Of a stretch of 64,000 nucleotides of DNA, positions 23,680 through 59,238 are shown in pieces. The position numbers were made by a program, and so were the translations under genes. The notes below the pieces were generated by a model that made no database searches, was not told the DNA's origin, and was given only the letters and a program-made list of their open reading frames with translations. Each line of letters starts with the position of its first letter. Within the stretch, counting starts at the first letter, position 1. Source of the DNA: Takakia lepidozioides (taxonomy: Eukaryota; Plantae; Bryophyta); the NCBI GenBank assembly GCA_030704615.1, contig CM060734.1, forward strand, positions 53,754,001-53,818,000, read 5' to 3'.

Positions 23680-24361
23680 TCAGATGCCAAAAAGCATACC
23701 GGGTCTAGTTTCAAATGTTGTGTCTCGGGTGAGAAATCCCAGTGCTTGCTCATAAACTCCCTCTTCTTTGTTGGGGAAGTGTGCAGTGCGGCTGCTAATG
23801 ACTTGCAACAGTTTTGTCTGTGGCTCCAGCAGCATTGTGATGGCCTTGGACACAAGACTGGCATTTGTGACTGCTGGTGGAGGAGGCCTCATTATGTCTC
23901 GCAGACGTGCACTCATCTGCACCAATCACAACCATGAGAGAACACCCTAGATACACCCTCAGCTGTTGTAGTGGTAAAGCAGTCCCTCTGAAGGTAATGA
24001 ATGTGGGGGCGTGGGGGGGAGCGAGAGAGAATGTACTCATAAGATGTTGTTTGCCGTAGCCTTGTGGGCACAGACCCTGCGCCCAGTTTGGGCGGAACAA
24101 AGGGGACCAGAAACTACCTTTGTGAGGGGCTCACTCCGGTAGTCTGGCTTACCTTGGTATAGAAAATTAGTTCGGCTTTCCAGATATCCTCTAGGTAGCC
24201 CTTCAAGCAAGCATCAATCTGCTGTGTGTGAGCAGCCCAAAAGTTAGACCCAACAAGCCAGGGCTTTGGGCTCAGCCTCAAGATTTTGAGAGTTGGTGAA
24301 CAGAGGTGCCGGGACAATGTTCTTGATTGTCCTGAAGAGGGTCACTCTCTGGTGTGCGCGC

Positions 24362-24399
<38 letters not shown>

Positions 24400-25664
24400 A
24401 TGGTTAGTGGTGTGGTCATACCAGGGCTACTACAGATCCCATGAGAACTCTAAAGTTAAGCATTTTTTGCCCGGAATAGTACTGGGATGGTGACCTCCGG
24501 GGAAGTCCCGCTGCTGCACCCCCACTACTGTATCAGAACTTTTGTTCCACTCAAACTGGGCGCGGGGTCAATGGCCACAAGGCTACGGCAAAACGTCTTA
24601 TGAGAGAGAGAGAGAGAGAGATTGTACTCATAAGACGTTGTTTGCCGTAGCCTTGTGGCCATTGACCCCGCACCCAGTTTGAGCGGGAACAAAAGGGACA
24701 GAACCTACCTCTGTCAGGGGCTGACGTTGGTAGTAAGACTTACCTCCATATATAGAATTAATCCGGGTTTTCCAGATATCCTCTAGAAATCCCTTCACAC
24801 AAGCATCAATCTGCTGTGTGTGATTTGCCCAAAAACTAGGCCTCAGGAGGGCCTGGGCTTTTGGCTCAGCTTCGAGACTTTCAAAGTTGGTAAACAGGGG
24901 TACAGGCACAATACCCTTAATAGATTTGAAGAGAGCGTCTCTTTGGTGAGAGAACCCCGGACAGTGTATCAGAAAATGAATACTGTCTTCAGATTGCCCA
25001 CACAACGGGCAATTGCACTCTCCCTTTCCTCTCTGCTTCTGTTTGCTGTTCAAAGGTAGGCTTCCTGCCCTGAGTTTAAATTTCAGTCTAGTGCCGAGAG
25101 TGGGTAGACCCTTGGGGTCATCCAAGATGTCCTCCCCCATGTCACAGACTGGAAACAAGTTCAGGGAAGTTTTCTGCCTAACTTCATTTTCATCAGACAA
25201 TCTCATGGCAACACACATGGCTGAGGACACTACAGCCTCTAAGTCAGATTTATCCAGCAGGGTCAAGACTTGCGGATCCAGGTCCAGGTCCTTGAGGATC
25301 TCTTCTACTCTCTTCTGCCAGGACTTAGCCTGTTTGACAGGGCGGTCCTGTTTCCAAGATATAGAGTTGATTAACTTAGGATATCTGGTGTTGGGCATAT
25401 GTTGCAGCTGACCCCACCATCTGACCTTGAATTCATCTCGTCGGGAGCTTAAGGACGGAATGCCAAACTCACCCTGAACAGCCACATTGGCTGTTTTGGA
25501 GCATGCTGACATACACTCCTTAAGCACCCCCACTTGAATGGATTCTAGAGACTTAGCCTGGTTGGAGTTATCAACCCATATAGCAGATCCGTACTCCAAG
25601 GCAGGTCTAATAACGCGACAAAGCATGGTTTTCTTAACCTCAGAGTTGACCCCTCTGCAGTGGA

Positions 25665-25707
<43 letters not shown>

Positions 25708-28700
25708 CTCATAAGACGTTGTTTGCCGTAGCCTTGTGGCCATTGAGAGAGAGAGAGAGAGAAAGAGAGAGCGAACCTCTCTGCAGTCTTCAGCATAAAC
25801 AATGCCGATGCAACAACCTCGCTCGTCCACGATTGGCACCACATCTTCTCTAAAGAAACGTAGAGCGACTGAACGTAACACAGCATCCCCTAACACTGGC
25901 CTTGCTTGGGCATAAGGCACCATTATGTTTTCAACTTGCTCAAATGGTGATACCTGAACATGAGACACAAATACCATTAGAGATGGAAAGAGAAACAGTT
26001 TTTTTGTGAGTACGTACTGATAAGACGACGTGTGCCACAGCCTTGTGGTGTATGAGAGAATGTACTAATGAGACGTTGTTGCCATAGCCATTGTGCTCAT
26101 AGGACTTACCTTGGTATATACAATTTGGTTCAGGCTTTCCAGATTTCCTCTAGAAAGCCCATCTCAATCTACGCTGCCCAGCAATTAGCCCCCAACAGGG
26201 CCAGAGCTTTAGGCTCAGCCTCGAGAATTTGAAAGTTGGTGAACAGAGGTGCATGGACTATATTCTTCATGGTCCTGAAGGATCTCTCTCTGATGAGAAG
26301 AGCCTGGATATTGTATCAGAAAATGGATATTGTCTTCAGGCCGCCCGCACATTGGGTATTGACAATCTCCCTTTCCTCTCTGCATCGGTTTATTGTTCAC
26401 AAGTGGACTCCCAGCCCTTTTGGATTTCGGTAAAGTGCCGAGGGTAGGTAGGCCCTTTAGATCATCCTTAAGGTCCTCACCCGTGTCACAAACTGGAAAC
26501 AAGTTCAGGGAAGACTTTCTCCTAACTTTGTTTTGTTGACACATTCTCCCTGCTTCCGACATGGCCGTAGACACTTCAGCCTTCAAGTCAGCGTCATCTA
26601 GGAGGGCCAATTCTTCCTGCCTAATATTCCAATCTCCTCTATCTTTTTCGTCGATCACCTTTGGGTATCTTGTATTAGGCATGCGATTCAACTGACTCCA
26701 CCATCTGAGCTTGAACTCATCATGAGAGCTTAAGGGTGGTACGCCAAACTCGCCCCAAAGAGCTGTGTTAGCTGTTCTAGAACAAGCTCACATGCTCTCT
26801 TTGAGCACCGAAAGCTGATCGGACATTTAGCATGGTTGGAATTGCCATCCCACACGGTAGATGCGTACTCCAAGGTAGGCCTAATGACGTTGCAAAGCAT
26901 GGTCCTTTCAACTTCAGTATAATCTCTCTGCAGTGGAAAATTTAGTGAGACCCAAAGCTGTGTGTTTGGCTGTTGGAACAACTTTCTGTACATGTGCATC
27001 CCAGTTACAACTGGAGGAAAACTCAACGCCAAGATATGTGTAGGAAGGGAGCACAGGGATCTCTTCACTTCCACATGCCCATTTGAGATCCCCTCCTCCC
27101 TCCCCATGATCATTGAGGGCCACCAATGCATTTAATAGCATTGGCTTCAAAGTACCTCTTTGCACAATCAGTCAACTTCTGAAGATTGGGGTATGCCCTA
27201 AGCCCACGAATTCACCCGCAAACATAAGAGCTGGTATGGTGGCATCACCCACCCAAATCCCTCGCTTTCCACATCTTCAGGGAGCTGATTAGTGAAGACA
27301 TTGAAGAGCAGTGGGCAGATGGCACAACCTTGAGCTACACCTTGGTCAATGTCAAATAAGTTCGACTTCTGGCCATTGACCATAACACAACTTTTGGTGT
27401 TCACATACAGGTTGTGAACCATCCTCCATATCTTCCCCTGACCCCAGAAGGCCACAGACAAAGCCACAGCCCGTCCATGCCATAAGGCTCTTTACATTCA
27501 GAAAGTTGACAAAGGTGGGTTTTCCGTCTTTTTTCTTTCCCTGAATAGTCTGGCTTAGGATAATCATATGGTTGACGCAGCCCCGCCTAAACTTCATGGA
27601 AAACACTTCTAGACTCCAAATCAACCTGAAGATGGGTGCTTATTATCCTACCAAACAGCTTGCCAGCTGCACTAAGAAGGGTAATGCCATGGTAGGTCCC
27701 AGGCTCTTCTGTCGCCTTTCTTACACAGATTGACAATGACACCCTCCCTCCAGCAGAAGGGTCTTCTTTTAAGGTTCGTGAGGAGGTCTACCATAGGATC
27801 GCCACCATGATTGTTGTGCTATCACACCCACCGGCTTTATAGCCCTTTAGATATTCAATGAATTCTCAGAAGAACAAATGGGAGTGTTTATTCCTTTGGG
27901 ATATACTCTCCAGTTCATCAGAGCTATCTTAGATCGCCCTTTCATTCTTTAGAAAACCACTCACCGCTAGAGTTAGATTTACGGCCAAGAAGGCTGTAAT
28001 GCGTTTCAAAGGTCTTCATAATCTCAACCATACAAGTCACCATTGCACCCTCGTTATTCCTCAAAGCATGTACTTGCTGACCATTTCTCAGCCTGTACAA
28101 AAGCTGGGAGGCCAATCAGAGTCTTTTCTCATTACCACCGTGGTGGCTCAAATTAATGTTAGGATACAACTCTTCCCAATATATTTCTTCTGAGCCTTTA
28201 GTAGCTGATTTTCCTATTTTTGCAGCTGGTAATATCTAGATCACAGCTCTCTGTCATCTTTGATACTGCAGCAGTCCCTATAAAGCTCCCGTCTCTCGAC
28301 AATGTTAAGCTTCATCTCATTGGTCCACAAATCCACTGCTCTTCCACATACAATAAGTTTCCTTCCAATGATTTTTTAAGCCACAGAAGTAGAGCCACAG
28401 GAGGAGGGAGAGAGAGATTGTAACATCCAAAGCATTTCCCAAGAAGATGTACTTGTGTACAATTTCTTGGCAGCCTTGTGATAAGAATGTACTCATGAGA
28501 CGTTGTTTGCCATAGCCTAGCCTTGGGGGAAGAGAAGGGGAGAGAGAAAGGGAGATACGTACCCCTCTCCGAAGTATGTAAGGTGAGAAGATATCCTCAC
28601 AGAAACCTGTCAAAGCCTGCAAACGTACGACAGCCTGCCACACACAATAACCCTCATAAGCACCTTCGGCCACCATTGAAACTTTTCCAAAATATTTCCC

Positions 28701-31700: not shown

Positions 31701-34700
31701 ACTGAGGAATATTCTTTTAAAGCACGCAGCCCTGTGTCCTTTCTGTCTTTTTCATCTGGCACCTTAATTGTGCTTGAAGTGCGCCAATAAACAGATGGAA
31801 TGTCTAGGACTCCGCCAGCTCCAGCCTAAAACTACCGCGACCTCACAAACCTACAGCATGTTCTCCAATTTCCTGTCTGCAAAGGCTATTACGCCCTTCT
31901 CAAATGTTGCACCAAACCATTCCCCAGCCTTTCCCCCCCTAACGAGAGCACACATGAATATGCAAGGAGAAAGGGCCTATCAACCTTCATGTCTGCCAAG
32001 AGCCGGAGACCTCGAGACATGTCTCCTCCACGCACACAGGCCAACATGAGGGAATTGAATGTCAGGCGCTGCGGATGCAGGCCATGTGACCGCATCTCGT
32101 CTATTAGTTTAAACGCCTCCAGCGGATTGTCCGACCGTGCATACCCCTGTCAACAGCACAGCAGTCGTTCAAGAGGCAGAGCCTCATTAGGTGCACCTAA
32201 GACTGCTTCCTGTACCCTTCTGGCCATTGATCTGTGGCAGTTTGCATAGAGCAGAGAGAGAGTGAAAATGTACTCATAAACACATTTGTAGCCTCATGGC
32301 CGTAGACCACGCCCCCAGTTTGGGTGGAACAGAGGGAACAGATAGTACCTTTGTGAGGGGCTCACTCCAGTAGCGGGACTTACCTTGATATAATCAATTA
32401 GTTTGGGCTTTCCAGATATTCCCTAGAAAGCCCTTCACACAATCATCCATCTGCTGTGTGCCCAGCAGTTACACCCCAACACGCCTGTACTTGAGGGAGT
32501 ATTAATGGAATAGACGAAATTTTTAGGCTCAACCTCAAGATTTTGCAAGTCGGTGAACAGAGGTGCACAGACTACGTCCTTAATGGTCCTGAAGAGGGTC
32601 GCTCTCTGATGAGAATACCCCTGTCCATCAGAAAGTCGATATTGTCTTCAGGCCGCCCGCGCATCGGGCATTGAGAATCTTCCTTTCCTCTCTACACCTG
32701 TTTATTGGTCAAAGGTAGAGTCCCAGCCCCGAGTTTAAGTCTAGTGCTCAGGGTAGGTCGGCCCTTCAGGTCATGAAAGAGAGAGAGAGAATTTACATTT
32801 GCTGTAGCCTTGTGGCCATAGACCCTGCCCTCAGTTTGAGCGGAACAAGAGGGAACAGACACTACCTTTGTGAGGGGCTCACTCCAGTAGCGGGACTTGG
32901 TAGAAACAATTGGTTTGGCCTTTCCAGATTTCCTCTAGAAATCCCTTCACACAAGCATCAATCTGCTGTGTATGAGCTGCCCAGTAATGAGACCCCAACA
33001 GGGCTAGGGCTTTAGGCTCAGCCTCAAGATTTTAGAAGTTGGTGAACAGAGATGCAGGGACTATTGTTCTTGAGAGAGACAGTCGAGTGCTGTTGATATG
33101 ATGGGAATAAGAGGAGACCTTTATAAGAAGATTGTAAGTGAAGGTGGTGACCCCGGTTCGGTTAAGTGGGGTGCGGTAACGAAGCAGCACACCCCGTGCG
33201 CGCCGAGCATCCCCTGCACCCCATCACTGCCAACTGAGGATATTGGACCAGCTGCTAACCAGAGAGACAGGCATGTACATACATAAACAGTTTTCTCAGC
33301 CCTCATGGCTGATGTGAAACATGAGGAAGGCAAAGAGAACCTCACCAGAATCAGCACAAGCATTCACTAGACTGTTGAGATGCACATCAGTTAACTGAGG
33401 TCGGCCAGGGGCAGTGCCGGCCTCCATTGATTCCAGCACCTCAAATGCATCGTCTAGTCTCCTTGCAGAGCCCAAGCCCTGCTACACATTCATCACCGCT
33501 GTCATTGCATATATAGGCTCTGGAAATGCCTAGAATTGAGGACGAAGCCCTCCCTGGACAGGTGATTAACTCCTCATCTTCATCTCAACGTCACTCATTT
33601 GTTCATCTTTGAGAAACAGATTAGTAACGGGCCATTGGAGCAATCTTCATGTGATGTTAGTTCATCAAATTTGTCTTGATGCACAAAACAGGCCTATTTC
33701 TCTACGATTACTGTTTCCATCAAAAGCTTACCCTCAAAAGAGTTCCATATGTGACATTATCAACACTGCAGCCTCCAGGCTGCACCATTTCATCAAAAAC
33801 ACGCAGGGCACGATTGATATCTTCGCAATGCACGCATGCTGCCATGACAGCATTCATAATGATGCGATTCAGCTTCTGATGCTTTTTCTTTGCACACTCC
33901 ACCTCCTCAAAGACCTGGTTCCATGCAAGTCCCATTCTGACCCACATTACAATCTCGTGTATCTAAAATTTATGAAAGAAGGATTGGCAAGTTACCGCAC
34001 TTAGCCAACTCAACAACACATTAGCTTTGCCTCCCATTTCTCGTGTTCTTCAAGTGAGAGTACCTCAATCATTCCACAGAACCTCCAAGAAGAATATTCC
34101 CACTTGTAAACATCTTGCCTGCCTATCCTGCCTGTATAAGTCTGGCATATGAACTCAGCCCACCAAGGTCTGCAGGACTCAATCTGATATCGCCAGTGTT
34201 TGCTCACAGCCATATCAAGAAACAGTGGATTGAGCTTGGGTTACGTGCCGGCAGGAACATATTAGTATAAAGCATGCAGTTGATTTGAGCACTGCTGCTG
34301 TGGCAGAAGATCTGACAAAATGGCTTTGATTTCACTCCTGTTAAGGACAAGAATGGCATGGTAGAAAATAAAGCAAACAAGCAAAGCTTTCCTGAGGGGT
34401 GATATCCAAGTGCGTGAACTTAAGCCTCAAAAAAGAAGATAGGAACATAAACGAATACTGTGTGCATTATATCTACTGTTAGGTGTTGTGCCCAAAAGTC
34501 TAGTATGAGGCAATCGGAAGGTTTTTCTGCTGCTCCACTTTGTCTAGTGTTCATGTACTTTCCTGGCTACTGTGGTCAAATTCCTATCACCACTTTGTTG
34601 CTGGCTGGTCAAGTTGGTATTGACCTAGTGGCTTTCCCTGCTTGTGAGAGTTTTACCACAGCAGCCTTCTCTTGCTTCGCGGAAAAGGTGAAGGTCTTGT

Positions 34701-41300: not shown

Positions 41301-44150
41301 GGTGATGAATTCAACCTGTGTGGGTTGACAATTCCAATCATGCTAAATCTCTATAATCCATTCAGGTCGTGGTGCTCAAAGAAAGCATGTCGGCTCGTTC
41401 TAGAACAGCTAATGTGGCTGTTCGGGGGGAGTTTGTCATACCTCCCTTAAGCTCTCGACGTGATGGGTTCAAGGTCAGATGGTGGGGTCAGTTGAATATC
41501 TGATGCCCAAAGACTGTTCGATGCAAATGAAGTTGGGCATAAAACTTCCCTGAACTTGTTTCCAGTCTGTGACATGGGCAAGGACCTTAATGATGATCTC
41601 AAGGGCCTACCTACCCCTGGCACAAGACTGAATTTTAACGTGAAGGCGGGAAGCCTAACGTTGAATAATAAACAGATGTAGAGAGGAAGAGGAGATCGTA
41701 ATTGCCCGATGTTCGGGCAGCCTGAAGACAAAATCCATTTTCTGATTCATTGTCCGGGATATTCTGACCAGAGAGTGACCCTCTTCAGGACAATCAAGAA
41801 CATTGTCCCTGCACGTATGTTCACGAACTTTGAAAACTCAAGGCTGAACCTAAAGCCCTGGCCTTTGGGGTCTAATTGCTGGTCAGCTCACACACCGCAA
41901 GTTGATGCTTGCGTGAAGGGCTTCCTAGAGCATATCTGGAAAACCCGAACTAATTGTCTCTATCAAGGTAAGTCACACTACCGGAGTGAGCCCCTCACGA
42001 AGGTAGTATTTGTTCCATTTGTTCCGCCCAAACTGGGCACTGGGTCTATGGCCACAAGGTTACACAGTAAACAACGGGTTATGAGTACATTCTCTCCCCC
42101 TGCCCACTAGGTAGCCTACTCAATGGCTGAACTTGACATGGGAGTAGGTAAACGTCCCTGTGACTAAATGCCGGCCTTGTGAGCCCTTGTTTGATTGACC
42201 TGAAGCAGTTTGCTTCAGGTAAGGCAGTGCATTGGATTTAGTTGAGAGAAGGGATCTCTCCTTTTGTAGAATATGCCTAAACAGGCCATTCCCTGCAGCT
42301 CCTATGGACTGATTGATCGTGAATGGTAACAAGCAGATCCATATTGGGGGCAGCCCTTTCCTCAAAGTGGGCAGTCTGGCTTGCATGCTCAACAGGCTAT
42401 TGTGTCTAAATCTCTTACCTTCTATCAATACATCTCTTTTTCCAGATAATGCACGGATTCCCCGGGGTGATATCTGGGAGCTGGTTACTTCTGCCAAATC
42501 TAGCATTTGTGTAGATTTACCCCACATCATGTCCTAGAAAGCTACTCTCTGATTACTCTCATCAGATAGTGACCCTCTTCGGGACCATCAAGAACTTAAT
42601 CCCTGCATCTCTGTTCACCAACTTTCAATTCTCGAGGCTGAGCCCTGTTGGGGTCTAATTGCTGGGCAGCTCACACACAGCAGATCGATGCTTGTGTGAA
42701 GGGCTTTCTAGAGGAAATCTGGGAAGGCAGCACCAGTTATCTATACCAAGGCAAGTCCCACTACTGGGGTGAGCCGCTCACAAAGGGAGTGTCTGTTCCC
42801 TCTAGTTCCGACCTAATTGGGCGGGGGGTTAAGGCTATTAGAAGCAATGTCCCATGAGTGCATTCTCTCCTTCTCTCGCCACCTTCCCCCACCCTCCTTT
42901 CTTCTTTTGTAGTAGGCCATTAAATGTGTGGACAACAGCGGTGTACTTGCAAGTTTCCTGACAAACAGCTATTGATCATGCAGTCCGTGTCCCTATTGTC
43001 ACGAGGGTTCCAGAAATGTAAGCAGGGTTTTTATATTTATCTTGGGGTTGAGGGGAAGCAGATCAGGTCCACATAACATGTGTGGCGTACTCACAGCAAG
43101 AAGAGCTCCTGGTGTCTTACAATGACGAACTCATCTATCTGTTTGACGATGAGATGGGCTTGGGTCCAAACCCCAAAGAAAGGCAATCGACAGAAGACAC
43201 GGGAAATAGTGATGTTGTGGGTCCCCAGCCAAGGTGTCCAGAACCAGAAGTGTACAAAGGACATCGAAATGCCCAAACTGTGAAGGGTGTCAACTTTTTC
43301 GGTCCCAATACTGAGTATGTGGTCAGTGGGTCAGACTGTGGACGAATATTCATATGGAAGAAAAGGGGTGCCAAGTTGTTGCTAGCTTGAGGCATGGGGA
43401 CAGCCAAGTAGTGAACTGCTTGGAGCCCCACCCATATTCCACCATTCTTGCAACCAGTGGGATTGATAGAACTGTCAAAATCTGGGCTCCAACAGCGAAT
43501 GAGCTCCTGCCACTTCCTAGCGATGCTGAGAAGGTGAGTGTGGTACCTTGTCATCTCTGTTGCCCTTGTGCTTGTGAGCAGTAGGCCTTGTGATTTGTAC
43601 CTCCACACATGTAGCTCTCCCTTCCTCTGCCATGCTGGCACCATGTTTTTCAGGCATTCTCCATCCAGTGGACTGTTTTTGGATAGATTGCTGAATCATC
43701 AACTGTTGTTCATGGGCTGTCTTTGTTAACCCTGTGGTGTGTTCTTGTTAACTTATTACAAGTAAATATATTTTAGTATCCAAAATGGCTGAGTTGTTTT
43801 GCGTCCATGTTGCATCCTTGTCATGCCATCAGATTTGGGAAAAGTGAGTCTATAAGTGAGACAAAAAGCTTGACGCTTGATCTGAGTGACTGTCGGGTTG
43901 TTTGTAGGTCATGGAATTGAACAGCTGGGAAAGAGAAAATCGGTCTCACATCTCCTTGACGCCAGATTCTCTAATGAATGTGTTGCGTTTGCAACGGCGG
44001 CATGCTCAGCGTGATCATGATCGTGGACACTCGCAAACGTTGATGGATGAGGATGTAGATGATGACGACGATGACGACTACATGGACTTTGAGGAGTTAT
44101 CATCCGATGAGGGGGGTACTGTGAACCCACGTGAGTGCATTATCGGTTGA
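38307..44150 (+). CDS. DCAF8-like WD40 (DDB1-CUL4-associated factor) gene; exons 38307-38414, 39058-39309, 39654-39797, ~40238-40493, 43062-43533, 43909-44150; apparent frameshift at ~43380
   Basis: [40 protein letters not shown]...[11 protein letters not shown]...[15 protein letters not shown]...[10 protein letters not shown]...[14 protein letters not shown]...[35 protein letters not shown]...[22 protein letters not shown]. Confidence 0.88.
40980..42100 (+). mobile_element. RTE-X-like LINE (internally deleted) in the WD40 intron
   Basis: [28 protein letters not shown]; 3' end ...ttatgagtacattctctc. Confidence 0.85.
42555..42875 (+). mobile_element. RTE-X-like LINE 3' fragment
   Basis: [20 protein letters not shown]; ends catgagtgcattctctc. 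Confidence 0.8.
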
Positions 44151-49438: not shown

Positions 49439-51020
49439 GAAAGATATCATAGTGCACTCCTGATTGTGGTGTGGATATTGGAGCTCCTTGGAAGCTCACA
49501 AGCCAACACGGCGCTCCCCCAACTACGGCGTCCCTGCCAATTAACACGGTGCTCCCCCCAACTACGGACTAGGTAGCATTCATGCTGAGACAGGCTACAG
49601 GATGTAGTCTGTCGAAACATGAACGCTACCTGACGTTATTGAATTTGACGACGATGTGAGCCGGTTACTATGTCGGTCATGAAATGCCAGCTTCACTCTG
49701 TCACGCTCAATCATCCACGAAGGCATACATAAGGTCATAGTCATCCACATTAGACTATATGATAAGCATCCATGAAGCCAGGTAAAATGTCATAGTCATC
49801 CTCAATGTATTCGTTCCCTTCACAAATAGGTAATGGACTACGGCAGGTGACACGGCTGCTGAGAACTAATGAAAATGGAACACGTCGGCAAACAACGTCC
49901 TAAACTCAATTACGGCGTCCGTGCCAAACACGGTGTTCCCCAACTACGGCGTCCTTGCCAATTAACACGGTGCTTCCCAACTACGGCGTCCCTGCTAATT
50001 AACAGGATGCTCCCCCAACTACGGTGTCCGTGCCAAACACGGTGCTCCCCCAACATGACGTCCATGCCAAACACAGTGCTCCCCAACTACGGCGTCCCTG
50101 CCAATTAACACGGTGCTCCCCAACTACGACGTCCCTGCCAATTAACACGGTGCTCCCCAACTACGGCGTCCCTGCTAATTGACACGATACTCCCCCAACT
50201 ACGGTGTCCGTGCCAAACACAGTGCTCCCCCAACACGACGTCCATGCCAATTAACACGGTGCTCCCCAACTACGGCGTCCCTGCTAATTAACACGATGCT
50301 CCCCAACTACGGCGTCCCTGCCAATTAACATGGTACTCCCCAACTACAGCGTCCCTGCTAATTAACACGATGCTCCCCCAACTATGGTGTCCATTCCAAA
50401 CACGGTGCTCCCCCACTACGCCGTCCCTGCCAATTAACACGGTGCTCCCCAACTACGGCGTCCCTGCTAATTAACACGGTGCTCCCCCAACTACTGTGTC
50501 TGTGCCAAACACGGTGCTCCCCAACTACAGCGTCCTTTCCAATTAATACAGTGCTCCCCCAACATGACGTCCATGCCAAACACGGTGCTCCCCTTGCCAA
50601 TTAACGGTGCCCCCCCTTCCCCCAACTACGGCGTCCCTGCCAAACACGTTGCTCCCTCAACACGACGTCCCTGCCAATTAACATGGTGCTCCCAGCTCGA
50701 TTCGACGTCCCTGCCAAATACGGTGCTCCCTCGACACCACACTGTGGAAAGATATCACAGTGCATTCCTGATTGTGGTGTGGATGATTGGAGCTCCTTGG
50801 AAGCTCGCAAGCTAACATGGCATTCTCCCAACTACGGCGTCCCTGCCAAACACGGTGCTCCCCCGACACCACGTCCCAGCACACCGTGGAAAGACATATA
50901 TCATAGTGCAGTCCTGATTGTGGTATGGATGTTGGAGCTCCTTGGAAGCTTGCAAGCCAATCACACGAATAGCGCCACACAACGTCCCCATCAACACGAT
51001 GTCCCAGAGCACACGACGTC
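49439..51020. repeat. GC-rich minisatellite (33-38-bp units, cacggtgctccccaactacggcgtccctgccaa[tta]a; ~25 copies, main block 49905-50735) with a ~75-bp companion repeat at 49439, 50747 and 50890
   Basis: Direct reading of the sequence. Confidence 0.92.
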
Positions 51021-51092: not shown

Positions 51093-53265
51093 ACATCAAT
51101 CTGAGGTCGAATTTCTGGGCTACATTATTTCCGACAAATGCGTCTTTATGGATCAGAAGAAATACAAACCATCATCAAGTGGATTAAACCTACTTCGGTC
51201 CGAGATGTACAATGTTTTCTGGGATTTGCAAATTTCTATAGAATCTTCATCAATGACTACTCCAAAATTGTTGCACCAGTGACACGACTCACATGGAAGG
51301 ACAAATTTGTATGGGACGACATGCAGACCCATCTAAACCATTCTTCTTGGAAGCAGATGCATCGGACTTTGCACTTGGCGCTATACTCTCTCAATACGGT
51401 ACGAATGACCAACTTCACCCTGTTGGTTTTCGTTCTCGCAAATTTTCTGCTGTAGAGATCAATTATAAAATCCATGATAAAGAACTTCTAGCGATCATCG
51501 ATGCTTTTGAGGAGTGGCGTCATTTACTGGAGGGAGCTAAACATCAGGTCACTATCTACACCGATCACAAAAACCTCGAATATTTTGTGAGTGCTCGTGT
51601 TTTGAATCGATGTCAAGCCAGATGGGATATGTGACTAGCAAGGTTTAATTTTGTTATTGCCTATCGCCCCGGACATCCTCAAGGGAAACCCGATGTTCTT
51701 TCTCGACGATCATTTCTTGCGCCGAAAAAGGAGGAGACAGCTTTCGACCAATAGAAATCCATCATCTTGAAACCAACAAATCTCCAATTGAATATGCTAT
51801 CTATGTCCACCTATGACGATGCAGAGATCATAAAGGAGATTTAGGAAGCACTGAAGAGCGACCAATTTGCTACGACACTACGAAGTCAACTAAATTGACC
51901 TCGAGACAACCCACATGTTACAAACGACTTCAAATTCAAAAATGACTTACTTTATTTCAAGGGACTTCTCTATGTACCTCCAGGACCTACACGATTTCGA
52001 ATTCTTCAAACATATCATGATCTTCCGGTTGCATGACATTTCGGCTTCAACAAAACAATGGAATTGATATCCAGAGACTATTGGTGGCCGCAGATGTGGA
52101 AACTCGTAAAAGAATTTATAAAATCTTGCGACACGTGTGCTAGAGCGAAGGGACCACGACATTGACCTTACGGCCTTCTTCAACCATTACCATTCCCAAG
52201 GGTCCATGGTCGTCCGTGTCTATGGACTTTATTACGGACATTCCAATTTCCAAGACCACCGATTCAATCCTTGTTATTGTAGATCGTTTTACAAAGATGA
52301 CACATTTCATTCCATGTAATAAAACGGTTATCGACGAGGAAACTGGAGGACTCTTCCTCAATAATATCTACCGCATTCATGGACTCACAAAGGACATCGT
52401 ATCTGATCGAGGACCATAGTTCATATCAAATTTCTAGAGGGGATTATTTCACATATTAGATACTAAGATCAATCTCTCTACAGCTAATCATCCACAAACT
52501 GATGGTCAACCCGAACGTGTAAACCAGATTTTGGAACAGTATCTTCGGTGTACGATAAATTATCACCAAGATAATTGGACGGACCTTCTGTCATTGGCTG
52601 AGTTTGCCTACAACAACACTATACATTCTTCGATTAAACAAACTTCATTTTTCTCCAATTATGGTCATCATCCTCGAGCAAACCATTTCCACATGAAGAC
52701 TGTTGGAAGCCCTGCTGTAGAAAACCTTGCTACTCATCTTGTTACAATTCACAAGAAGCTTACATTCCACCTCGCAGAAGCTAAAAAACAATACAAGGAG
52801 TATGCAGATCAACATCGTCAATTCCAACCTCAGTTCAAGGTCGGAGATTGTATGTGGCTTCAAACCTCGCGTTCATCAAAGAAGTTGGATTATCAACGTC
52901 TGGGACCATTCAAAATTATTCGACAAATAAATCCGGTCAGTTTTCGGCTTGAACTCCCACGAAGTATGCGCATCCATCCAGTCTTTTATGTTTCATTATT
53001 GGAGTTGTATCATCCATCGAATATTCCAAGGAGAGTCTCCGTACCACCTCCACCAATCGAAGTCAATCAGGAAATTGAGAATGAAGTCGACAAAGTCCTA
53101 AACTCTCGCATCAAGTATAAACGTCTTGAGTATTTCGTACATTAGAAAGGCTACGACATCAGCGAACGAACGTGGGAACCTTCATCCAACCTCGTCAATG
53201 CATCTAACAAAGTCCAAGAGTTTCATCAACGATATCCAGCTAAGCCCCGAGTTACACGTCAATAA
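51093..53265 (+). mobile_element. Ty3/gypsy chromovirus (Tcn1-like), 3' pol part: RT end, RNase H, integrase, chromodomain; degraded
   Basis: [106 protein letters not shown]. Confidence 0.93.
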
Positions 53266-53830
53266 GCCGTCACAACGATGATGTCAATCAAGTTAGCTTC
53301 AAGGTGAAGACTCCACATTCAATGTACCTGATACACGCTAAGGAGAGAGGAGCACCACACATCAGTATATATAGCTACACTTCCAGCACTCTTGCATCTC
53401 GTATTTGCAGCATGAAGTTACATGAACCAAATACATTGGAGTTGTCGCTTACCCAACATCACGCTGACGCTCTCGAGACGATGGGTCACAAATGCGACGC
53501 GTACTTCCTTGTCTGGCCCCCGTACGACGACAAGTGGAGCGTACTTGAAGTCTGATAATTCTATTGGAGGTTGTGGGTTCGGACCCAGAGAGCAACGAAA
53601 TCATGTTTGAAGGCATCTTCAAAAATCAGAATGCTCAAATCACTGCGTGGTCCCTAGTTTAAGGTGTTGGACACTATCGATGGTTGTAGGGACCTATAAA
53701 CCATTTGAGTCAAGAACGAAGAGCCGAATACTTGGCAAGTACCATTCGCCGGATTTTGGATTTTCTCCAACTCTAAGCAAGTCCAAGATTTTACCGCTCC
53801 TCGAGGAACTCGGCGTTAGAGGAGGGGTGA

Positions 53831-54497
53831 TATCACGGAGATAGTCCAGAGGAACTTACCAGAAGTAAATACCAGAAGTAAATACGAGAAGTTACCAAGT
53901 TACCATGTTACCGGAAGTTACCATGTTACCGGAAGTTACCATGACTTATCGTGATTTATCGTGATCTTCCATGATTTACCATTAGTTACCAAATTACCGG
54001 AGTTTATCAAATTACCAAGAGTAACTTGGGAAACTGCTCAGGAAGCTTCTTTTGGAGAAAACTTCTCCATCAAGATACCTCCTTTGTTTAATGAAGCTTT
54101 TCCATCAATAAACCTTTGTTTAATCTTGGAAATTTCTTTATTAAGAAACCTCTATAGGGGAAGCTTCTTAGGGAGTAGCCAATATATATAGGAGACTGGA
54201 CACTCTTCAGTCTCGCCAACATAAGTTCAATCTACTCTTGTTTCAGTTCCAGTACTCCAGTCCAGCTTCTAGTACTCTAGTCCAGTTTCCAAGTATCTGG
54301 TACCCAGGTCCAGTTTCCAGCCTTCCAGTATTCGAGTTGAGTTCCAGTATCTTGTACTCTTGTCCATTGTTATAAAGATCATCTTGATTCATGTTTACCC
54401 ACCATGCGTTCGGCCACGCCGACCTTGACTTTTTGTCTAGTCTTGTATCTCTAGTCTGATCTCTTGTTTATGTTCAGTCATGTTCTCGTCCTTGACA
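53831..54497 (+). mobile_element. 3' LTR of the chromovirus
   Basis: PPT agaggaggggtga immediately upstream. Termini T(A)TCACGG...TTGACA. Internal gttacc repeats and a TATA-like tatatata. Confidence 0.75.
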
Positions 54498-56438
54498 CCT
54501 ACTACAAAAGCGCGTCAGGCCAGTCCAGTTAGCCATCACCAACACCATCCTGTGGTTGTTCGCAACAAAGGCAACGCCGATAGTACATAATCATCCCGGT
54601 CTAGAAAGCATGACTGACGACGAACTGTGGAGATTGTAAGTTTGCCCCCGAATCCTGCTTGTTTTCTTTCGCGGGGAGGGGGAGAGAATGAGGGGTACTA
54701 GAGGATGAAGCAGCGGTCATCACGTGTATGCCGCACGTGCGGAACGACGATAGGTCACTCGTGTTCCCGTCGTTGTCGTGTCCATTGATGACATATGTCC
54801 CAAGTTCGTGTTTATTTCGTTTTACTAATTATGGATTGTGTTGGGGAGGAACAGCTTTTTCAAAATCGACCGGAAGTTTGAACGACCTGGAAGAAGAGTC
54901 AAGTTTCAGAATTTTATAATCACTGAGGGGGTTGCGGTCAGTGTGCTGTCGGGCTCGCCCCGACGCCAACCTACAGTCACAGCCAGAGTAGGACAACTAC
55001 TTGATTCGCCATGTTTGTTTTTTATTGCCTTTAGTGATCGGGCGTACCGGCTCGTGACGCAAATGCGGGTGAACTTGTTGGACGACCAGCATCGTCTTAT
55101 TATGTGCAAAGTCAAGGGCCATGTGCGGGAAGGCGATATCCCCACCCTCCTTGAACCCGAAAGCGAGGCTCATCGCTTTAGATGAGTTATTTATGTGACG
55201 TTTCCATGAATCGAAATCGGTTTTAGCTGAAGGTTAGAAACACGGCAACATGATCTGTTGGGGTCGATGTCTACAACAGAATGGTTTATGACCGTATATA
55301 CCCCCTGCAAATATGTGTGGTCGAGTGCCTCCAGGCGCCTCAACCTTGTTTTAGTGAAAGATCCCATTTAAGGCGTTGGATACCCGAGAGCTTCTCTTTT
55401 GTTCGGGAAATGTATTGAAATAAAAGCTTAATATTGTTTTTGAGGTAGTTTGATTGGGAGTGGACATGCATGTCGTCTCTTCAGTTGAGGGAAAAACCAT
55501 CTTGTAGATTGACGTGTTTTTAAACGGACGTTGGTCTTGTTTTTTCGCAGGTGAAAGGACACGAGAAAAAAGAGATGCCCAAACCGACTCCGCACACCCA
55601 TGTGCCATTGCCTAAACGAGTCGTGTCCATCGACCCGGGCCGAAAATACCTCTACACAGGAGTGGTGTACTCGCCCAAAGTAGAGGCCGCGCTGAACGAG
55701 CCGTGGGTGGACCAAGGGGACCGGTTCCAAGTGATCCGCTGCAACAAGGCACGGTTCTACACCATGTGTGGGTACCGGCGGCGGGCCAAGCTGACGAAGA
55801 GGTGGATGGCCAGGAACGAAGCCGTGACGCAGTTCAATTCGAGGGTCAACACCGTCTCCGCTAAGGTGGCGACTGTAGAGGGGTATAGCATGTACGCAGC
55901 GTCGGTGCTGACACATCTCCGAGCACTGAACGAGTTCTACATGGTGAACAAGAGGATGAGGGAGCTGAGGTGGGCGACATGGATAAAGACGGAACGGGCC
56001 TATGTGACGCTTGCAAGGGAGGTGACGGCGAACAACCCGACGACGGTGGTGGCCTTCGGGGACGCCTCTTTCGCGCACAACAGCCCCGGGACGGAGAGCA
56101 CACCAACCTCCAAGCTACAGAAGAAGATACGGGAGAAGGCAAACGAGATGGTGATGGTGGGCGAGTTTCGAACTAGCCAACTATGTTGCGGTTGTAGCGA
56201 AAGGATGGAGGCCATGCCCCAGTGCTGATTCCCGGGACAGACTGGGCGTCGCGGTTCATACGCGGTCCGACTGTGTCCCAACACAGCCTGCTATCGGACT
56301 ACATGGAACCGAGATGTCAACGCGACGGTCAACATCATGCACCGGTTCTTGGAAATGTGGGACTTCCGGCCTCGCCACCCGGCATTCTGCAGGGCGGAGA
56401 GGCCGGAGAGGGATGTTGCCAGCCGCACATCTCATTAA
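54498..56438 (+). pseudogene. Fanzor (eukaryotic TnpB-family RNA-guided endonuclease), 5'-truncated by the LTR; exons <=54498-54635, 54855-54987, 55551-56438; one in-frame TGA at 56226-56228
   Basis: Spliced: ...[14 protein letters not shown]...[16 protein letters not shown]...-RVVSIDPGRKYL (RuvC-I D)...VVAFGDASF...PT...VGEFRTSQLCCGC (RuvC-II E + Zn)...*...VRLCPNTAC..TWNRDVNATVNI (Zn + RuvC-III D). GT-AG introns join in frame. Confidence 0.88.
55035..55185 (+). pseudogene. RPS28: 40S ribosomal protein S28 fragment inside Fanzor intron 2
   Basis: [50 protein letters not shown]. The N-terminus is missing and there is a small frameshifting deletion. Confidence 0.85.
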
Positions 56439-56532
56439 GACTGCCATAGTAACAGGCAGTCCGCGCTGAGCGGGTGAGGGTGCAAACCCTCTCCGCGATT
56501 ATGCACAACGGTGGGTTTTTATACTCACATTG
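56439..56532 (+). ncRNA. Putative Fanzor omegaRNA scaffold / element right end
   Basis: Three stem-loops directly after the stop: GACTGCC/GGCAGTC (56439-56461), GCGG..GAGGGT-GCAA-ACCCTC..CCGC (56470-56496), GTGGGT/ACTCAC (56511-56528). GC content drops after this. Confidence 0.6.
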
Positions 56533-56561
56533 AATGTACGATGGAGGCCCTTGAAATGAAC

Positions 56562-56655
56562 GTTGTTTACAGTGGAAGGAAACTGGTGCATTTTGTTGAA
56601 AAATGTATCTTACCAAAAGAGTCATGTTGTTTCCAGTGGAAGGAAACTGGTGCAT
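56562..56655. repeat. 30-bp direct repeat x2 with a 34-bp spacer
   Basis: gttgttt(a/c)cagtggaaggaaactggtgcat at 56562-56591 and 56626-56655. Confidence 0.9.
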
Positions 56656-56906
56656 CTTTCAAAATCTCGAGGCTGAGCCCAAAGCCATGGCCCAGTTGGG
56701 ATCTAATTGCTAGGCAGACCACAAGCAGATGCTCATGTCAAGGGCTTCTAGAGGAAGTATGGAATCTCGAACAAGATTGTCAGTGTCACGGTAAGCCCCA
56801 CTACTGGAGTAGGCCCCTCACAAAGGTAGTGTCTGTTCCCTTTTGTTGTGCCCAAGCTGCACAGAGTCTATGGCCACAAGGCTACGGTAAAGAACATCTT
56901 ATGAGT
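56656..56906 (+). mobile_element. RTE-X-like LINE 3' fragment abutting the p44 pseudogene end
   Basis: ctcgaggctgagccc...ggccacaaggctacggtaaagaacatcttatgagta. Confidence 0.8.
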
Positions 56907-59238
56907 AAGGTTGAGATCTTGATGTAGAGATACTTTCACAACCAGGACAGTTATGGAGGCTCTCATGAATGTAAAGGTCACATTCAAAGCAGAAGTGCTG
57001 CCTGCAGCTTGGACACATGAGCCGCACCCTGCTTACCCTGCCCCCTGTCATACAAACAAAACAGCAGATTGATGAGCATCCTGTGCAGAAAAAAATGATA
57101 AATGCCAGAGAGAGACAACTTGTGAAAGAGGTACCTGTGAAAGGGAGTTCCTGCTGGCAGCCATAACAGAGAAGGGCTATGCTTTGCTTCCCATTTGCCT
57201 CCGCCAAATTACCAAACTCCTCAAATGGGGGCACTGGAAAAAGATGGTGATAAGAGCGTGCCAAGTGGGGAGATGAAACCAATGTCAGCCCACATAGGTG
57301 ACACTCAGTGGGAAGGTCACATACACGAGCTTTGCAATGAGGGCAGGTGTAACCTCCCCTATCGTCACTTCTCTGTGCAAGCACAGAGTGCCACTGCATC
57401 TTCTGCACCCCTTTGTGGAAAGCCCATTCGTACTAGGCTCGCTATAGGTGTCTCTGCCAGTGCATGCTCCATTATCAGGTGGGGCATGCTCCATTATAAG
57501 GTCTTTCACGTGGGCCTGTATGAGAGCACATGTTGTGCTTAGTGTATGTGACCAAGAGAAGTGGGCGAAGTAAGAGCTATGAGCTCCCCAAGAAATCAAA
57601 GGCTCCAAGTAATGAATGTATCAACTGCACTGGACTCCATTGCACAGAATTCAACAATGAGAACTACAAGGGAACACTGAAGTAAGATTTGAGGAGGTAT
57701 TAGTTCCACCATACAATGGAGGTCAGATTCTACTTGGACAAGGGTCTGCAATACCAATGATGCACTCAAAACTTGCCAATGAAGTAAAAATGCTGATACT
57801 GTAGCCCACATTCTTTCTTACATGGTGATGAGAAAGAGAGGCTAGCACCCACAAACCTCGCTTGTTGCAACGGAATAAATCCCGCTCGTTCATTCACATA
57901 AAAGTTTACAAATGTAAACTTCAGCAGCCAGCCTACAACAGAACATCGGATATTAGCCTCCTTGCACTTCTGGATTGCCTCCATGAGGTCTCCAGGGTCA
58001 CAGGTGCCAAGTGCTGAAAAGATGAGCACCATCTCCCGGTGCCCATATGTGGGTATTTGAGACAAAAACCCTCTGGCCAAGTCAAGTGCATTCTGTATCG
58101 AAACATCCCCTGTGCGCGGGCCTCCTATTTTGACCTCGATATGTGTGTGAAAGGTACAAGTCACATCCACAGGAAGCCTGAACGGCCAATAGGAGCAGAG
58201 AGGAAGAGATCATAGAGCAGAGGAACTTTTGGAGACGGAAGAGAACTTACAGGACTTGTAAGTGGGTGGAGTTGACAGATGGCATTGGTCCATATAACTG
58301 GTTGTCAAAGAGAATCCTGTTCCATACAAAATAGGCACAAAATATAGGTCAAAAAGGAATAAAAATCAAATCTTCTGGAATTACAACAATCTTTCCTTCT
58401 TTTTTATTTTTGTGAGAAAATGGGGAAACGCCCCAGAATCAACATTGTCGCTCGAGACCATCGATTGCAATCAACTCGCGCTCAAAGGCCTCAACACAGT
58501 TGGCCACGATTCCCATGCGGCTGGGCCGAAAGTCCGTCTCCGCAGCCGCCTGGGCAGGCATCCCACGGTCCCCAGTTTAGAATGAGGCCTTCATCTTTGC
58601 ATACCAATTCTAGGGCTGGGGTTTAAGGACCCTCTTTTGTAGCTAAATGCTACTATCAAATGTACAGGAATCTTACTGGGAATGAAAGCATATCTAAGGT
58701 CACCGAGAATATTAGAAGAGAGGGGCCAACAAGCCCTTGCGGTGTCCTTTCACCGAACATAGGCTTGCGTACTCGAACCAAGGGGAATCCAAGCAGGGTA
58801 GGGGCTTTTCTCAACGCATAATGTGAGAGCGCCCATCCTCTGCCACCTACGACTCTCGCGGTCATAATGGTGCCTCGAGTAGATTGGATGCGGGGTAATC
58901 TGAACAACACACTCTCTTTTCTGGCTAAATACAAAGAAAAACTTGAAGTGAAGTTTGCGGGATCAACTCACTCGGGAGAGATCGACGAGAAGGTAGAGGT
59001 AACGGATAATGCCGCGCTGGATGTGAGGGCCAGCCATGGCTGCAACCTTCTTTCGATGCTGGCGCTGCTGCTGTACAACATCCACAGGTCGCAACAATCC
59101 AGACTCATCCTCTTGAAGAACCTCCCAAGACCGATCGTCCGCGTACGCTCGCTCCCAAGCCTCCATGTCCCGCCCGGCTTCCTCAGCGTCCACATCTCCA
59201 TCATCTTCCACACCGTATGCCACATTTTTCTCCCCCAT
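56899..59238 (-). pseudogene. GTF2H2: TFIIH p44/SSL1 subunit, intron-containing pseudogene
   Basis: AWERAYADDRSWEVLQEDESGLL...IQRGIIRYLYLLVDLSR; GDVSIQNALDLA..IPTYGHRE; GYTCPHCKARVCDLPTEC..CGLTLVSSPHLARSYHHLFP; FCFECDLYIHESLHNCPGC. Frameshifts at ~57930, ~57470 and ~57360-57385; the central vWA exons are not seen. Confidence 0.85.

Follow-up and report, generated by a model that had tools for sequence, protein, structure and literature searches.

To our knowledge, Fanzors are the only RNA-guided DNA nucleases so far known from eukaryotes. The Fanzors that have been tested come from fungi, protists, molluscs, algae, and giant viruses. Plants are mentioned only in broad terms in the papers known to us, and the one tested streptophyte example of which we are aware is the alga Klebsormidium.

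The Fanzor1 of Spizellomyces punctatus (SpuFz1), for which the structures 8gkh and 9ceu-9cez are available, uses an omegaRNA composed of a 75-nt scaffold and a variable guide of 14-15 nt (Saito et al. 2023, PMC10432273). In this fungus, the 80-nt region that separates the stop codon from the 3' inverted repeat (IR) gives rise to an RNA of 88-90 nt, and gene-less "ghost" omegaRNAs exist besides the copies that carry a gene (PMC10432273). In the three solved Fanzor1 (Fz1) complexes, the first stem-loop (SL1) has 7 bp and contacts the RuvC and TNB domains, and it is separated from the guide by one to three further stem-loops that vary between systems (PMC11423790). The source of Fanzor RNAs is the 3' non-coding region that adjoins the right end of the element, and its conservation may reach into the open reading frame (ORF) (PMC10530073).

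The DNA analysed here, hereafter named the window, is a stretch of 64,000 nt from Takakia lepidozioides (CM060734.1 of assembly GCA_030704615.1, positions 53,754,001-53,818,000, forward strand), and all feature coordinates below are positions within it. A tract in this window agrees with the published descriptions in both position and structure, including the exact 7-bp SL1. The segment 56436-56534 probably represents the right-end module, non-coding and conserved, of a Fanzor1 family that has multiple copies and an intron, and it matches an omegaRNA scaffold in position and architecture. By analogy with the described systems, we infer that such a tract would be transcribed, bound by the nuclease protein, and used together with a guide.

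Identity of the adjoining gene

Judged by its sequence, the gene upstream of the tract is a Fanzor1, a member of a clade of eukaryotic and viral TnpB homologues. An exhaustive phmmer search with the 225-aa piece encoded at 55551-56225 recovered 471 relatives, the best of which shared 44% identity, and a hidden Markov model (HMM) built from 23 full-length relatives matched the locus with an E-value of 1e-73 over HMM positions 369-574. An alignment of the C-terminal halves of the family (alignment A1) was the basis of a profile search against the PDB. Its best match was SpuFz1 (8gkh, 5.5e-19), accompanied by the Fanzor1 proteins of Parasitella parasitica (PpFz1, 1e-16) and Guillardia theta (GtFz1, 2e-10), whereas the Mimivirus Fanzor2 (9b0l) and bacterial TnpB reached only 3.6e-4 and 7.8e-4, respectively, indicating that the protein is closer to Fanzor1 than to Fanzor2 or TnpB.

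The catalytic and structural motifs are consistent with this assignment. The RuvC-I aspartate in IDPG, the RuvC-III aspartate in NRDVNA, and the zinc-finger pattern CxxC...CxxC are all present. In alignment A1, the canonical TnpB site of the RuvC-II glutamate reads FGDASF, and the relocated glutamate is found as the invariant E of GEFRTS; a relocated glutamate in a DEFRTS-type motif is a described Fanzor feature (PMC10530073). The Pfam model PF07282 matched the locus fragment weakly; of five relatives that were scanned, three (P0001, P0004, and P0005) scored above its threshold. The original prediction had called the gene a Fanzor, and the HMM, the motifs, and the PDB profile matches together bear out this identity and specify the clade as Fanzor1.

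Exons, intron, and damage of the window copy

The most upstream detectable Fanzor1 exon lies on the plus strand at 54855-54987, with an uncertain start, and encodes a WED-like strand motif. HMM positions 323-364 matched 54853-54981 with an E-value of 6e-4, and tblastn with the relative P0002 matched 54850-54966. This exon ends on a codon boundary before the GT at 54988, the first letters of a phase-0 GT..AG intron of 563 nt (54988-55550, plus strand) that contains a T-rich tract and a CAG acceptor. The pieces flanking the intron are read in different frames and join in frame, and the HMM positions on the two sides, 364 and 369, are six residues apart. The last exon (55551-56438, plus strand) carries IDPG, GEFRTS, the zinc-finger cysteines, and NRDVNA, and it ends with the TAA stop codon at 56436-56438. 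The strong HMM match mentioned above falls at 55563-56225 in this exon, and a second one, covering HMM positions 577-629, falls at 56229-56435 (E-value of 6e-15).

Between these two matches, an in-frame TGA (56226-56228, plus strand) interrupts the last exon within the variable loop between the zinc-finger halves, and the tblastn alignments continue straight across it. Removal of this TGA by splicing was considered and rejected, since only one GT..AG pair encloses it, with a spacing of about 19 nt that is too short for an intron.

Only HMM positions 323-629 of 634 were detectable in the 64-kb window, the exons being searched separately. The N-terminal half (WED, REC) was not found in the window by hmmsearch with the --max option at E-values up to 10, and the locus holds no complete WED-REC-RuvC-TNB ORF. 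An inverted copy of 56510-56533, which would represent the left end, was absent from the 64-kb window at up to three mismatches, an inverted-repeat search likewise revealed none, and no second copy of 53200-56660 occurred within the window. Either the element has lost its 5' part, or the left end is located elsewhere.

The locus represents the 3' remains of a Fanzor1 element and is thus a fragment of a member and not a functional member of the family. With a 3' fragment and a premature TGA, this copy cannot supply its own nuclease, and any activity would therefore need a nuclease in trans. For the gene placed before the hairpins by the original prediction, the Fanzor identity stood, but what occupies this position is not an intact gene; it is a 3' fragment with a TGA at 56226.

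Two features of base composition were also observed. CpG is not depleted across the Fanzor exon and tail (55551-56534), with 78 observed against 82 expected occurrences. Most of the differences from the family that are private to the window copy have G or C in the family and A or T in the window.

The hairpin tract after the stop codon

Sequence reading and RNAfold located three hairpins at 56439-56532, directly 3' of the stop codon. SL1 (56439-56461, plus strand) is a perfect stem in which 56439-56445 pairs with 56455-56461 through seven Watson-Crick pairs around a 9-nt loop, exactly the stem length of 7 bp described for SL1 of Fanzor1 omegaRNAs. SL2 (56463-56504, plus strand) has a 6-bp core (56476-56481 with 56486-56491) capped by a GCAA loop of the GNRA type; the core is lengthened by 5 bp (56470-56474 with 56492-56496) and enclosed by a weak outer closure of 3 bp (56463-56465 with 56502-56504). 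SL3 (56506-56532, plus strand) consists of a 6-bp stem (56511-56516 with 56523-56528) that includes one G-U pair and an extension of 3 bp (56506-56508 with 56530-56532). For 56437-56540, RNAfold returned exactly SL1, SL2, and SL3, with a minimum free energy of -41.1 kcal/mol and 18% of the ensemble. The fold had a z-score of -3.72, none of 200 dinucleotide shuffles folded as well, and a 131-nt version of the tract gave a z-score of -3.5.

The three consecutive hairpins that had been predicted right after the Fanzor stop codon are therefore real. Their details hold as well, namely the perfect 7-bp first stem, the GNRA-capped second stem with its extension (counted here as 5 bp), the 6 bp of the third stem, and the AT-richer sequence after the hairpins, where the GC content falls from 0.52 in the tail to 0.41 in the flank; the last exon has a GC content of 0.59.

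As controls, the neighbouring segments were folded in the same manner. The next 104 nt downstream of the tract showed no excess structure (z +0.22), and the last 104 nt of the ORF had a z-score of -2.55 because of a long hairpin at about 56365-56407 (plus strand), which lies within the last 75 nt of the ORF and was found by an inverted-repeat search as well as in the folds. Considering the z-scores of the ORF end, the tail, and the flank, the predicted structure fills the ORF end and the next 96 nt and then stops. The in-ORF hairpin may belong to the scaffold as its 5' part, or it may serve as a processing site.

These folding results bear on the explanation that the hairpins are palindromes arisen by chance in decayed, GC-rich sequence. 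Only a single locus is concerned, and the neighbouring coding sequence is mildly negative too, with z-scores of -1.7 to -2.6. However, not one of the 200 shuffles folded as well, the tract is kept in about ten copies, and the relatives possess a parallel architecture, all of which leaves chance with hardly any likelihood.

The minus strand of the tract folded with -35.7 kcal/mol and a z-score of -2.94, as any set of DNA palindromes would. Folding of both strands would suit an alternative in which the hairpins are a terminal or subterminal structure at the DNA level, made up of the right terminal inverted repeat (TIR) and transposase-binding palindromes, with no guide-RNA role. The relatives are indeed bounded by TIRs and their last stem overlaps the TIR, and the contigs of the probable RNA run X5 contained no transcript of the tract over SL1-SL2. 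Nevertheless, the G-U pair in SL3 renders the plus-strand fold the stabler of the two, and the 7-bp SL1 following the stop codon is an RNA feature conserved in the solved Fz1 complexes (PMC11423790). Moreover, the nuclease-bound RNA in every Fanzor tested corresponds to this very tract and overlaps the IR (PMC10432273, PMC10530073). A role confined to the DNA level is accordingly considered unlikely, and the omegaRNA scaffold remains the preferred reading of the tract.

No Rfam family matched the locus at the gathering thresholds. When E-values up to 10 were admitted, the only matches were sub-threshold ones of miRNA models to palindromes, and they were rejected.

Other copies in the species and the right end

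Four DNA runs, all from one sample, contained the stretch 55530-56660. The contigs aligned to 55000-57000, at a likeness of at least 80%, came from two DNA runs, one probable RNA run (X5), and one small run. Across 55000-56540, introns included, the summed contig depth was 5-13 times the single-locus depth. By contig depth, the intron at 54988-55550 is multi-copy, as the exons are, demonstrating that the copies arose at the DNA level.

The summed depth up to the bin 56474-56540 amounted to 630-730 in X3 and 220-410 in X1, and in the bin 56541-56607 it equalled that of the error-free contig of the locus itself, namely 70.1 in X3 and 31.1 in X1. About ten copies from the same species align to about 56533-56534 and none in the next bin, and the alignments end at ~56533 according to the bin fractions in X1 and X5. 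The window has T at position 56500, whereas G is found there in nine or ten contigs, and these G-variant contigs have at most 34 letters left to the contig end. The depth drop, the bin fractions, and the contig ends together indicate that the repeated Fanzor unit probably ends at about 56533-56534, which is 1-2 nt beyond the closure of SL3; the right end is defined here as the point where the contigs of other copies stop aligning to the window sequence. As anticipated, the tract is thus encoded between the ORF stop (56436-56438) and the probable right end of the element, marked by the copy-number boundary at ~56533-56534. The element end had been predicted at 56528-56532; a boundary, seen as a drop in copy number, was found within 2-5 nt of it.

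Could the break at ~56534 be private to this decayed copy, produced by a deletion or rearrangement, in which case the family would really end further downstream, the three hairpins would make up just the 5' portion of a longer tail, and the guide proposed here would be incorrect? The tails of the relatives are longer (130-160 nt), the window copy is damaged elsewhere, and the boundary was judged by alignment to the sequence of the window copy itself. Even so, the boundary falls just 1-2 nt past the closure of the last stem, and the predicted structure is gone beyond it. The flank past ~56534 is single-copy by contig depth, not an inserted repeat, and unstructured (z +0.22). The SpuFz1 tail, with 75-80 nt, is shorter still (PMC10432273). 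A private break is therefore regarded as quite unlikely, and the boundary is read as the probable right end of the repeated element.

The terminal 60 nt occurred in 9-10 distinct contigs, compared with 5-6 for the ORF end, and one contig skips or replaces 56400-56481. The contig excess and the skipping contig are compatible with solo ("ghost") tails. Deletions that shift the frame are present in at least one other copy, and the Fanzor family in this species is partly decayed.

Repeats of other kinds were observed around the locus. Downstream, between the right end of the Fanzor and a SINE-like repeat, the flank is single-copy except for a 33-nt direct repeat (56562-56594 and 56626-56658, 94% identical, with 64-nt spacing), part of which can pair with the ORF at ~56337-56352 in a long fold. 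The SINE-like repeat is of very high copy number, with a summed contig depth of up to 2x10^5; it starts at ~56608-56656 and ends at 56907, and in other copies a CT-rich microsatellite follows this end. Its relatives in the window are found at ~24000-26600, 32300-33060, and 41500-42840, and the repeats around a 5S-like head at 24408-24522 (Rfam 5S_rRNA, 57.8 bits) are members of its family.

Within the intron, the segment 55034-55490 is matched by an 873-nt contig of X5 with a depth of 162, far above the rest of the locus. This contig matches the segment only, at ~85-90%, and continues into unrelated sequence on both sides, and it seems that an expressed paralogue or a transposable element (TE) fragment shares the segment. 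Upstream of the Fanzor, a decayed integrase of the Ty3/gypsy type with its C-terminal region was found at ~52000-53265, containing stops, and no LTR pair matching 53200-55600 was present in the window. A satellite array with a period of 37 nt (and 72 nt) and 16 or more units extends over 49890-50900.

Relatives on giant-virus contigs

The closest proteins, with 36-44% identity, are encoded on gene-dense metagenome contigs that carry the giant-virus hallmark genes Pox_VLTF3, Evr1_Alr, ATG8, and Glyco_transf_25. Two of them, L001 and L006, are copies on one giant-virus contig of 395 kb (ENA ERZ25067524), and they are ~95% identical through the stop codon and 130 nt beyond, after which the likeness ends abruptly. 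Their 130-nt tails contain three hairpins, with z-scores of -4.0 and -4.9, and a TIR matching at 93% has its right arm in the last 30 nt of the tail and its left arm ~320 nt upstream of the ORF. In a further relative, L009, the TIR has 28 nt and its right arm ends 158 nt after the stop codon. In addition, a hairpin inside the ORF lies shortly before the stop codon in L001.

The layout of this Fanzor1 clade is thus an ORF-end hairpin, three hairpins, a TIR, and a sharp end. By its position and architecture, the window copy would be a shorter form of the same layout, with tail sequences that can no longer be aligned. Position and architecture are the basis for proposing that the tails are homologous, since no sequence similarity to the tails of the relatives remains beyond the ORF. 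By analogy with the relatives, SL3 would overlap the right terminal repeat.

Several further observations concern these viral elements. L001 includes an intact, TIR-bounded Fanzor1 element of 2.17 kb (L001 3653-5819), with its second copy, L006, on the same contig. The last stems of L001 and L006 differ by a substitution plus an indel, and the pairing is kept. L007 represents the same site from a different sample, and its ORF is broken into pieces of 512 and 107 aa. A homologous-protein search with the 225-aa piece, restricted by candidate length and a word filter, gave no match at E-values up to 1e-5. A search of viral contigs yielded only two weak 50-aa matches (one giant-virus MAG), which were left aside, a single-protein query of metagenome contigs returned no relative, and the exact 22-nt SL2 pattern was absent from metagenome contigs.

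In Mimivirus, palindromes mark the ends of transcripts, a regularity called the "hairpin rule". The hairpins of the window could accordingly be viewed as 3'-end or termination signals of an mRNA, or as a 3'-UTR structure, possibly of giant-virus ancestry, given that the closest relatives reside on giant-virus contigs and that SL1 begins immediately after the stop codon. For such a signal, however, one hairpin would be enough, whereas three hairpins and the in-ORF hairpin fill the tract to the end of the element in the manner of a Fanzor RNA. The gene also has a spliceosomal intron, so its expression, if any, would depend on the host machinery. This explanation is very improbable, and the tract is still best understood as the scaffold module of a Fanzor1 element.

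RNA data and proposed mechanism

X5 comprises assembled contigs of one probable RNA run, and contigs cannot reveal RNA ends. No X5 contig covered the ORF or SL1-SL2, and one low-depth contig, derived from another copy, covered ~56474-56533. The latter may be part of a longer host transcript.

The putative guide flank is 56535-56555 (plus strand), as suggested by analogy with TnpB and Fanzor (PMC10432273, PMC10530073); a guide beginning at ~56535 follows by this analogy only. In the tract, SL1 directly follows the stop codon and two further stem-loops come next, the last of them presumably overlapping the terminal repeat, and the element would end 1-2 nt later. If a copy were active, an RNA of about 100-170 nt would arise from it by read-through or by separate transcription. 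The last 15-20 nt of this RNA, on the 3' side, would be taken from the DNA next to the element and would then direct the nuclease to the empty site that they match. A relic such as the window copy would act at most in trans, with the nuclease provided by an intact copy.

A more far-reaching scenario envisages, in a genome like that of a land plant, a still-active, intron-bearing Fanzor1 family of giant-virus ancestry with a three-hairpin omegaRNA of roughly 95 nt that is also dispersed as solo "ghost" tails; relic tails would be loaded in trans by nuclease from intact copies, and the whole would constitute a plant-native RNA-guided nuclease. At present, this scenario is doubtful.

Significance and comparison with known systems

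Fanzor1 nucleases with an omegaRNA are a kind of system already known, to which the locus adds a member. Taken as a single decayed locus, its value is one data point for the right end of the family. Its interest comes chiefly from the plant-like host, from the intron, from the presence of multiple copies, and from the affinity to giant viruses. The spread of Fanzors into this lineage, probably via giant viruses, would be documented by an intron-bearing Fanzor1 family that has multiple copies in a plant-like genome. Should an intact copy exist, it would provide a compact editor adapted to plants, for which the boundary of the scaffold is known.

Among the known systems, SpuFz1 belongs to the same protein clade and likewise has an SL1 of 7 bp, and its guide comes from the flank. 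Solo "ghost" tails are known for SpuFz1 and are suggested here by the contig excess over the terminal 60 nt. The SpuFz1 scaffold comprises two stems plus a linker, whereas the window tract has three stems and an in-ORF hairpin, and no sequence similarity exists between the two. The window differs further in its plant-like host, in the intron of the gene, and in the broken state of the copy. RNA expression and activity were demonstrated for SpuFz1, while the window tract is known from its DNA sequence. GtFz1 resembles the tract in its multi-stem scaffold, which has a 7-bp SL1 and three further stem-loops and overlaps the 3' end of the ORF (PMC11423790), an overlap comparable to the in-ORF hairpin plus SL1-SL3 of the window. 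In contrast, its protein match is weaker (2e-10), and its stems differ in number and sequence.

The giant-virus elements L001, L006, and L009 share with the window copy the in-ORF hairpin, the three hairpins, and the sharp end, with tails of 130-160 nt. They differ from it in being intron-less and intact, in their TIRs of 28-30 bp, and in their viral context; their tail sequence is unrelated, and their last stem is longer than that of the window. KnFNuc of Klebsormidium nitens (Jiang et al. 2023, PMC10530073) is likewise a streptophyte Fanzor1 with several genomic copies, and, compared by its description, its RNA, too, is encoded in the 3' non-coding region that adjoins the right end (PMC10530073). 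Unlike the window gene, KnFNuc is intron-less and experimentally active.

Bacterial TnpB of the IS200/IS605 and IS607 elements shares the general plan of a scaffold at the right end, a guide taken from the flank, and a RuvC nuclease. The TnpB RNA, however, mostly overlaps the 3' end of the ORF, whereas the Fanzor RNA extends further downstream and overlaps the TIR. The catalytic glutamate of the window gene also departs from that of TnpB, being relocated as in other Fanzors.
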